Shown: positions 10,284 to 13,200, counted from the stretch's first letter. The stretch: 64,000 nucleotides of DNA from Macrostomum lignano (GCA_002269645.1 NIVC01000616.1:310001-374000), one strand, 5' to 3'. Made by a program: numbers and translations. The notes: generated by a model from the sequence alone, not told the origin.

Positions 10284-13200
10284 ATGGGCAATGCGGACTC
10301 GAAGCTGGCAGCATCAGCGCAGAGGCTGCTGCACGCGGCCATCAGAGGCAAATTGCAGAGGGTCCGCGAGCTGGTCGAACAGATTTCGGACGAGAATTTC
10401 AGACAGCAGAGCTGCCTGCTGGCCGCAGAGTCTGCTTCGAGGCGGAGTAAAATGGCAGCAGTGGAAGTTCTGCTTCAGTACATTCCTGACCAGAGGCGCA
10501 GGGACCTGTTCTGCTCGAGAAATTTACAGTTCGCCATTAACAGCCAAAACCAGGAAGCGGTCGTTTTCTACTTGAATTCCATTTCTGACAGAACTTTGCT
10601 GAAAAACTGCTGCGCCAAAGCAGCGGGAACTGCCTCCAATGCCCGCGACTGGGGCGTGGTCAGATTTCTGGTGCAGCTGGTTCCCAATAGGGAGCTCCGA
10701 GACCTGTGCTGCATTATGGCCGCGCCCGCCGCTAGACGGGAAAGGAACTGGAGTGTAGTAAGATTTCTCGTGCTGAACATCAGCTCCCAAGCCAATAAGG
10801 ATGCTCTATGTGTTAAAGCGGCAGAGTCTGCAACGGCTGACAGCAGCTGGTCAAGCTGGGCGACAGCTCAGTTCCTCATTCAGGCCATCGGCAGCCCCCA
10901 ACTCAGAGATCGGTGCTGCATGCAAGCTGCTGAGGCCGCCGCCAGAGCCATGAACCTGCTCATGCTGCGCGCTTGTCTCCAGTTGGCAGCGAAGTCGTCC
11001 ATTTTTCAAATCGCCGATCCAAATCCCGGCATCCCGGCGCACTGGCTGGCCCACGACTCTTCGCTGCTGGACGCCCTCTCGCATCTGACCATCTCAGATG
11101 ACAACACAATATTGATGGCCACCCTGGCTCAGATGCAGCCAGCTCAGATGTTCCAGCTGCTCCGTCTGTCAGTCAACCATGGCCATGTCTCGCTGGCCCA
11201 GACGCTCATCAATAAAAATCGCCTCTACATAAAAGAGAATGCGATCGATCTGCCTGACGGCACGGGAGCCACAGTTCTCATGCTGGCAGCAGACGCAGGC
11301 CACCATGAGCTCATTGAGCAGCTGTTGGAAATCGGCGCGTCGGTGCGAGCTGAGGATCGTCAAGGTCGGACGGCTTTGTCCCGGGCTTGTGAAGCAGGCC
11401 ACGTGAGAGCTGCCAAGGCTCTGACAGACGGAGGCGCAGAAATCTGACACCGGGACCATCGGGGCCTGACATGCAAGCAGCTGGCTGCCGACAATAATCC
11501 ACCCATCGTGCTCGAGCTGCTGAGTGAAACAGCAGTAATGGAGGAAGACAGTACAGACGGAGCAACTGCTGGAGGCGAGCTTAAACAGTAAGTTCCAGGA
11601 ATAACAGAAAAAATCTGTTACTTAAACATCATCAGAGCTGGTTAATCCGTAATGGTGTTTTCCCTGCTACACTAAGTTTTTAACCTCAACTTCATTCCCA
11701 GTGAGCGGCCACGGAAGATAAGCAAGGAGCTGCATCGACTGCTCTGTGAGGCTGGATTCACTCAGCACAGAGCAGTGTGCCAGCAACGATTGGCGGACCT
11801 CCTGGAGGAAGGTAGTCGAGCGCTGACACAAGAGGACAGACAGATGACTGGCAGCTTCGCTGAGGGCTGGGCCAACAGTCTGGTACAGGTGAACGGCAGG
11901 ACAGGGGCTGACTCCGACATCGACTGGACTGTCTTGGTTCCGGGACAAACTTTTCACCTGAAAGGCGCCTGCGTCAATTCCACTGCTTGCAGACATGCCA
12001 GACTGCTGGCGGTCAATGAAGGCCATGCGCAGGTTGACGTGGGGTCAGGTAAACGTTAATAAAAAATTACTTACTTACTCACTTACTTACTTACTTACTT
12101 ACTTATTTACTTACTTACTTACTTACTTACTTACTTACTTACTTACTTACTTACTTACTTACTTACTTACTTACTTACTTACTTACTTACTTACTTACTT
12201 ACTTACTTACTTACTTACTTACTTACTTACTTACTTACTTACTTACTTACTTACTTACTTACTTACTTACTTACTTACTTACTTACTTACTTACTTACTT
12301 ACTTACTTACTTACTTACTTACTTACTTACTTACTTACTTACTTACTTGCTCACTTACTTACTTACTTACTTACTTACTTACTTGCTTACTTACTTACTT
12401 ACTTACTTACTTACTTACTTACTTACTTACTTACTTACTTACTTACTTACTTACTTACTTACTTACTTACTTACTTACTTACTTACTTACTTACTTACTT
12501 ACTTACTTACTTACTTACTTACTTACTTACTTACTTACTTACTTACTTACTTACTTACTTACTTGCTTACTTACTTACTTACTTACTTACTTACTTACTT
12601 ACTTACTTACTTGCTTACTTACTTACTTACTTACTTACTTACTTACTTACTTACTTACTTACTTACTTACTTACTTATACTTACTTACTTACTTACTTAC
12701 TTACTTACTTGCTTACTTACTTACTTACTTACTTACTTACTTACTTACTTACTTACTTACTTACTTACTTACTTACTGCTGTTTTCAGGCAGCCAGCCTG
12801 CAATGACTGCCCCAGCCTGCGGTGTACGACCTACCCAGGACACCTGTAGGGCTATTCAGTGCTGCAGCGGCTACTTCAAGTACAGGATACATATTCTGCC
12901 CAAATATTTTCTAACACCCGTTCACCTTGTGAGTGCAACGAGGCCAGACTCAAGCAATGAGCTCAGGGTGAGCTTTAGCTTCCATGAACGACAGATAATG
13001 AGAAATTTGAGCACAGTTCAGGGCCAGCTATTCACCATGATCAAGTTCATCTTTAAAAAATACTTACCAATCAATATGTCAACGCCAGGACTCAAGACGT
13101 ATCACGCAAAGACGTTACTCTTTTTCATGCTTAAGAAGCACGCTTATTTTGATAGCATAACACAACTCTGGAAACCCGAGCATCTGGCAATACTGCTTAG

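Follow-up and report, generated by a model that had tools for sequence, protein, structure and literature searches.

In-frame stop codons ahead of long, protein-like reading frames are known from several described systems. Programmed readthrough genes, such as the mammalian UGA-CUAG cases and traffic jam in Drosophila (PMC9226519), combine an in-frame UGA-C with a long open extension. In pairs of selenoproteins and their cysteine-containing counterparts, UGA stands opposite the Cys codon of the homologues. After whole-genome duplication, a duplicate can be disabled by one point mutation while a nearly identical sister stays intact. We analysed a stretch of 64,000 nucleotides from the flatworm Macrostomum lignano (GCA_002269645.1, NIVC01000616.1:310001-374000), hereafter the window, in which a gene for an ankyrin-Mab21 protein invites comparison with all of these: a TGA codon at 11445-11447, codon 388 in the frame opened by the ATG at 10284, interrupts an ankyrin repeat upstream of the enzyme part. 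The original prediction, made from the sequence alone, had offered programmed readthrough, selenocysteine, a recent nonsense allele or paralogue, and an assembly error as explanations. Comparison with two sister copies of the gene leads us to conclude that the TGA is most probably a recent, copy-specific nonsense substitution in one of three subgenomic copies, and not a programmed signal.

The architecture of the protein has its own precedent in the ankyrin-fused cGLRs (Li et al. 2023, PMC9980059), found for instance in Stylophora pistillata, which join N-terminal ankyrin repeats to a Mab21/cGAS-type nucleotidyltransferase (NTase) with a GS...DxD motif and a Mab-21_C lobe, and which have undergone large lineage-specific expansion.

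Translation of the open reading frame (ORF) reads GAEI*HRDHRGLTCKQLAADNNPPIVLELLS around codon 388, exactly as first reported, and Pfam places this position within an ankyrin repeat, where it falls in the loop of the GAD(V/A)N/S motif. The frame runs on to the donor noticed originally, a good GTAAGT whose GT occupies 11588-11589, so that the exon ends at 11587. A spliced three-exon model covering 10284-14263 comprises 1041 codons followed by a natural TGA at 14261-14263; codon 388 is its sole internal stop, and the 653 codons open 3' of it bear out the initial estimate of about 650. The premature TGA lies 140 nt from the exon 1/2 junction, with two introns 3' of it. In the public annotation, the gene called on NIVC01000616.1 is the 387-aa ORF that ends at this codon, and the public gene calls hold no separate coding sequence (CDS) 3' of the TGA in the window copy. 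No second copy of the gene was found within the window.

Nor is there a plausible intron that would remove the premature stop, as the original prediction had held. We listed 39 in-frame GT...AG pairs spanning the TGA, among which one donor was credible, CAC|GTGAGA at 11403. It was rejected: all of its acceptors lack a pyrimidine tract, and in the intact copy described below this stretch forms part of an exon.

Three copies of the gene were compared, all from assembly Mlig_3_7: the window copy, a second on NIVC01001020.1 (L001) and a third on NIVC01004199.1 (L002). L002 is intact and corresponds to a deposited protein of 1041 aa (P0107, PAA48234.1, BOX15_Mlig014288g2). Applied to L002, the three-exon model yields a translation identical to this protein, residue for residue, which confirms the gene structure and establishes that an intact copy exists. 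Codon 388 is TGT (Cys) in both L001 and L002. P0108, a fragment from the older ML2 annotation, likewise has Cys at position 388. No Logan-derived proteins were found for the gene, whose 90%-identity cluster consists of three members, all from NCBI or UniRef.

L001 turned out to have a premature stop of its own. At codon 318, GAG has become TAG (L001 9956-9958, equivalent to window 11235-11237), 70 codons upstream of the window TGA, so that both stops precede the enzyme domain. The protein annotated for this copy (P0001, PAA73301.1, carrying the suffix g1) starts only at Met333, a truncation explained by the TAG.

The three CDS are colinear without a single indel, and the loci are syntenic over many kilobases. 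The window copy differs from L002 at 19 of 3126 nt (99.4% nucleotide identity) and from L001 at 38, and L001 and L002 differ at 39; exon 2 is 100% identical between the window and L001. Length variation is found in the introns: intron 1 of L001 has a 19-bp deletion, and intron 2 is shortest in the window (740 nt), longer in L002 (918 nt) and longest in L001 (1002 nt), the window version consisting almost wholly of about 178 copies of a (TTAC)n unit at 12067-12777. Alignments with the sisters extend past the natural stop, to window position 14293 for L001 (98.2%) and to 23458 for L002 (98.7%). The assembly of the inbred line DV1 has been described as three paralogous subgenomes, S, L1 and L2, and the rate of single-nucleotide polymorphism in Mlig_3_7 as 2.2% genome-wide and 1.1% in CDS (PMC10733133). 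The CDS divergence of 0.6-1.2% among the three copies is exactly as this three-subgenome model predicts. We infer that L001 represents S and that the closer pair, the window copy and L002, represents the two L variants.

The direction of the change is clear from the wider family. In an alignment of 32 paralogues, the column at position 388 holds a sense residue in every member (22 Ser, 5 Asn, 3 Asp and 2 Cys), next to H389 and D391, which are invariant. With TGT in both sisters and a sense codon in all paralogues, the TGA is a derived state found in the window copy alone, and the T-to-A change at 11447 belongs to the short window branch. A sense codon in close homologues was the observation that the original prediction had named in advance as telling, and it speaks against both readthrough and selenocysteine while bearing out the option of a recent nonsense allele or paralogue. 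Shorter paralogues (P0019, P0022 and P0018) seemed at one point to have recurring premature stops; no pattern emerged, and the apparent stops were cases in which the tblastn alignment had run on into an intron or into upstream sequence without homology.

Selection was examined by placing every variable site on the branch of the one copy whose base is not shared by the remaining pair. The window branch received 3 synonymous changes, 5 nonsynonymous changes and 1 stop (9 changes in 3126 nt), the L001 branch 15, 13 and 1, and the L002 branch 6, 4 and 0. Codons 55, 77, 104, 692 and 717 are among those private to the window copy, which has E692 and R717 downstream of the stop. Summed over all branches, 24 synonymous changes stand against 22 nonsynonymous ones and neutrality is rejected (P=1.8e-5), so that constraint must have acted on the gene until recent times. 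The proposed comparison of the ratio of nonsynonymous to synonymous rates (dN/dS) on either side of the stop was carried out between the window and L001, giving 0.31 for the whole CDS, 0.47 upstream and 0.24 downstream of the TGA. The clean downstream frame is a sign of the youth of the mutation, and not evidence of translation from the window copy.

These observations can be joined into a simple account. A T-to-A substitution would have turned a Cys codon into TGA in one ankyrin-Mab21 copy of this neopolyploid species. The window copy would then yield at most an ankyrin-only fragment of 387 residues. Under the usual exon-junction-dependent decay rule, if it extends to flatworms, a stop so placed counts as a premature termination codon; since two exon junctions follow, the nearer one after 140 nt, the messenger is probably degraded by nonsense-mediated decay. 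The intact sister would cover the function and the redundancy mask the defect, leaving the window copy itself presumably functionless. The downstream codons would still be clean because the 9 changes of the window branch represent too little time for decay, and the independent TAG of L001 would fit a picture in which redundant duplicates are still being lost in the wake of genome duplication, here in a large, fast-evolving gene family. In all these respects we see no essential difference between the window copy and the nonsense-disabled duplicates known from whole-genome duplications: there is one disabling, derived point mutation opposite a 99.4% identical intact sister, further decay has yet to set in, the genome comprises three paralogous subgenomes (PMC10733133), and a second copy has been disabled independently.

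Four points weigh against this reading. The window branch taken alone has a dN/dS of about 0.5 (P=0.28), and its 8 non-stop substitutions are too few either to show or to exclude relaxed constraint after the stop. It is a mild coincidence that two of three copies carry stops just 70 codons apart, both before the enzyme domain. The C at position +4 permits some basal readthrough, so that a trace of full-length protein is possible (PMC4748822). Finally, the A at 11447 rests on a consensus of PacBio reads assembled with Canu and polished by Pilon with Illumina and RNA-seq reads, with annotation derived from transcripts (PMC5730564); of the read pairs of this genome, 93% have more than one mapping location, and chimeric scaffolds are numerous (PMC10733133).

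This last point, together with the fact that a single base is involved, is what speaks for an assembly or polishing error, in which case the true base at 11447 would be T and the window copy intact. We regard such an error as unlikely, and thus retain this option of the original prediction only as a minor one. Mis-polishing with reads from the sisters would have brought in T and not A, and the occurrence of A in neither other copy disfavours an artefact. Private variants are normal in the window copy, whose branch has 8 further ones, and substitutions are in general the rarer type of error in polished long-read consensus sequences.

More doubtful is a separate product, in which the stop would split the fusion into a sensor and an enzyme, the latter starting at Met419 through an internal promoter, spliced-leader trans-splicing or reinitiation. 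The in-frame ATG occurs 91 nt past the stop, upstream of the predicted NTase spine helix, and ankyrin repeats are absent from some members of the family, such as P0109. Spliced-leader trans-splicing is widespread in M. lignano, which also has polycistronic precursors (PMC5730564). Yet no downstream CDS is called in the window copy, the annotation treats the intact copy as a single gene, and the interval 11448-11538 contains no pyrimidine-rich acceptor. Reinitiation after an ORF of 387 codons is, as a general matter, not expected in eukaryotes.

We give slightly less credence still to programmed or functional readthrough, by which a usefully decoded UGA-C would give both an ankyrin-only form and the full enzyme from the window copy. 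Known efficient cases of readthrough share the motif UGA-CUAG. The context here, UGA CAC CGG, has the +4 C and lacks CUAG, and no RNA structure that would stimulate readthrough or suggest editing was found: the 120 nt from the stop (11445-11564) fold less stably than shuffled sequences (z=+1.5), and the 141 nt around it (11376-11516) are average (z=+0.2). Whereas the stops of programmed readthrough genes and their contexts are conserved across species, this one is private to a single copy; missing from both sisters and from 32 of 32 paralogues, it is not maintained by selection. The 653 open codons past the stop, which might be taken in favour of readthrough, are accounted for by the recency of the mutation. 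The claim that UGA-C is the leakiest stop context does agree with the yeast literature, in which it is the leakiest tetranucleotide and Cys-tRNA is favoured (PMC4748822). By analogy, readthrough at trace level would tend to put the ancestral Cys back, although we would take such leakage as basal and not as a programme. One could imagine that decoding at a low but useful rate, preferentially by Cys-tRNA, supplies an abundant ankyrin-only sensor or decoy along with a little full-length enzyme, and that selection is turning redundant copies into regulators of the intact one. By analogy this is conceivable but improbable; if true, low-rate decoding in one copy and truncation of a second would mean that redundant subgenome copies are becoming regulators of the intact copy.

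Selenocysteine at codon 388 is effectively refuted: UGA aligned with Cys (TGT) in two sister copies is the classic selenocysteine/cysteine pattern, but an Rfam scan of 9500-17500 on both strands found no match to a selenocysteine insertion sequence (SECIS) family at E<=10 (in line with the failure to recognise one by eye, and with just two chance-level matches to unrelated families), the site is a variable, non-catalytic ankyrin loop residue (S/N/D/C) and no redox site, the change from Cys to UGA is very recent, the natural terminator of the gene is itself UGA, and the sister alignments of exon 3 and its 3' flank continue past that terminator at the identities given above.

A copy-specific nonsense substitution thus remains the preferred explanation. 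By itself, the finding carries little weight, being a further case of a premature stop among the redundant duplicates of a neopolyploid genome, and it was already public in that the annotation ends the gene model at the codon-388 TGA. It does give a caution for work with Mlig_3_7: no in-frame stop should be called recoding until the locus has been set against both of its sister copies. With two of three copies independently knocked out, the gene may also show on a small scale, within a candidate family of immune genes, how duplicates are lost once a genome has been duplicated. The positions of all features are collected in Table 1.

Table 1. Features of the ankyrin-Mab21 gene in the window (positions counted from the first nucleotide of the window)
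Feature	Position	Strand	Description	Evidence
Exon 1	10284..11587	+	ATG, N-terminal ankyrin-like solenoid, linker, premature TGA	ORF, translation, deposited 1041-aa model
Last two ankyrin repeats (codons 361-413)	11364..11522	+		Pfam Ank_2/Ank, paralogue alignment
Premature stop TGA (codon 388)	11445..11447	+	From TGT (Cys), T-to-A at 11447	L001, L002, paralogue column
Synonymous window-only marker (codon 396)	11471	+	ACA, where L001 and L002 have ACG; 24 nt past the TGA	
Met419, first in-frame ATG past the stop	11538..11540	+	Possible start, in principle, of a 623-aa Mab21-only product	Translation
Intron 1	11588..11701	+	GTAAGT...CAG, phase 2	
Exon 2	11702..12048	+	Start of NTase core, MTGS and DSDIDW	Translation, alignment to Mab-21 domain proteins
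G485/S486 (exon 2)	11850-11855	+		
D507 (exon 2)	11916-11918	+		
D509 (exon 2)	11922-11924	+		
Intron 2	12049..12788	+	Nearly all (TTAC)n microsatellite	
Exon 3	12789..14263	+	Rest of NTase core, Mab-21_C lobe, C-terminal helical region, natural stop	
Candidate third acidic residue D568 (exon 3)	12839-12841	+		
Putative poly(A) signal AATAAA	14478..14483	+	About 215 nt past the natural stop	Consensus match only

The context of the gene family is of more interest than the stop itself. Pfam recognises ankyrin repeats at residues 295-387 in the window copy and 295-391 in the intact copy (Ank_2, 59.5 bits for a cutoff of 27.3). A larger solenoid is suggested by an AlphaFold2 (AF2) model of the full intact protein, built with the 32-sequence alignment: residues 1-413 form a confidently modelled solenoid of ankyrin-like helical repeats, about twelve in number, of which Pfam finds only those in 295-391, and every one of the top 50 Foldseek matches is an ankyrin or DARPin structure (best E=6e-8). 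The upstream repeats share the pattern 'CC-x-AA ... W-x-x-V-x-FLV'. The protein begins with MGNADSK (Gly2, Ser6; window 10284-10304), which we take to resemble an N-myristoylation signal and which would then suggest membrane anchoring.

The enzyme part is far more divergent. Downstream of the stop, the window copy gives a weak Pfam match to Mab-21_C, a domain matched by 31 of the 32 family members, and none of the 32 matches PF03281, the Mab-21 NTase model. The NTase core (476-618) is modelled by AF2 at a predicted local distance difference test score of 30-45, too low for structural comparison with cGLR or CD-NTase proteins. A single-sequence search of the PDB with the C-terminal part gave nothing significant, while a family profile of residues 430-800 matched cGAS (E=4e-5), Drosophila cGLR1 (1e-3) and MAB21L1 (0.06), in the C-lobe only. 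An exhaustive profile search retrieved 925 relatives at E<=1e-3, with 87 clusters (50% identity) at E<=1e-30. Ten distant relatives (E 1e-13 to 1e-17) were scanned, and nine of them have both Mab-21 Pfam domains above cutoff, some with additional TPR repeats. The matches to these distant relatives also take in the last part of the NTase core; the MTGS, SDID, SQPA(M/V)T and QDTC of the family align with their GS, SDxD, GPA and conserved-Asp positions.

For cGLRs, the motif h[QT]GS X8-20 [DE]h[DE]h X50-90 h[DE]h has been used as a criterion (Li et al. 2023, PMC9980059). MTGS-X20-DIDW fits its first two elements. The candidate third acidic residue, D568 (QDT), follows 57 residues later and aligns with the conserved Asp of Mab-21 relatives, with flanking residues that are not hydrophobic. 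On sequence grounds, the enzyme is a Mab21/cGAS-family nucleotidyltransferase whose active site is plausibly complete. The original designation as a cGLR enzyme is therefore only partly verified, as regards the family and plausible catalytic residues, which leaves the enzyme a candidate cGLR. The likeness to ankyrin-fused cGLRs covers the domain order, the GS...DxD motif, the Mab-21_C lobe and the large lineage-specific expansion; the M. lignano proteins differ in their very divergent NTase core, with its missing PF03281 match and low-confidence AF2 model, and in an additional helical region, about 250 aa long, at the C-terminus.

The expansion is considerable, with at least 40 ankyrin-Mab21 paralogues in M. 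lignano (P0002-P0041, P0109-P0121), in which GS, DxD and the candidate third Asp are conserved; some members of the family are fused to kinase, phosphatase-like or other domains. When the C-terminal part was the sole query, the matches were confined to Macrostomum proteins and two metagenome proteins, and a search of the available library for Macrostomum together with cGLR returned no papers linking them. M. lignano has dozens of these genes with apparently complete catalytic motifs and belongs to a phylum for which an extensive loss of cGLR signalling has been reported.

As regards the genomic surroundings, a Na+/Ca2+ exchanger gene (PF01699) is called upstream of the gene in L001 (1-6133, minus strand, equivalent to window ~2767-8066). 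No gene is called within 10 kb upstream in the window copy, where the DNA is 87-95% homologous to L001 with many indels; the exchanger lacking from the window calls may reflect a copy-specific loss or an annotation gap. Downstream, from about 18440 onwards on the + strand, the public gene calls place a PARP1-like gene of 1006 aa with zf-PARP, PADR1, WGR, PARP_reg and PARP domains. Arrays of a 28-bp minisatellite unit, CTCAGTTGCTGGGCCAGCCTCCCAGATC, flank the ankyrin-Mab21 gene at 8070-8657 (~20 copies) and 19947-21626 (~60 copies), the second of which lies inside the span of the PARP-like gene and produces long spurious ORFs in all three frames. Tandem repeats are very dense throughout the window (1-64000), with more than 30 distinct arrays scoring at least 300, among them (TATC)198 at 6596-7383, (TTCCA)n at 9209-9842, a 14-mer present in about 123 copies at 47642-49455 and (ACAG)136 at 50255-50798. 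This density is consistent with the 15% of simple and tandem repeats reported for the M. lignano genome (PMC5730564).

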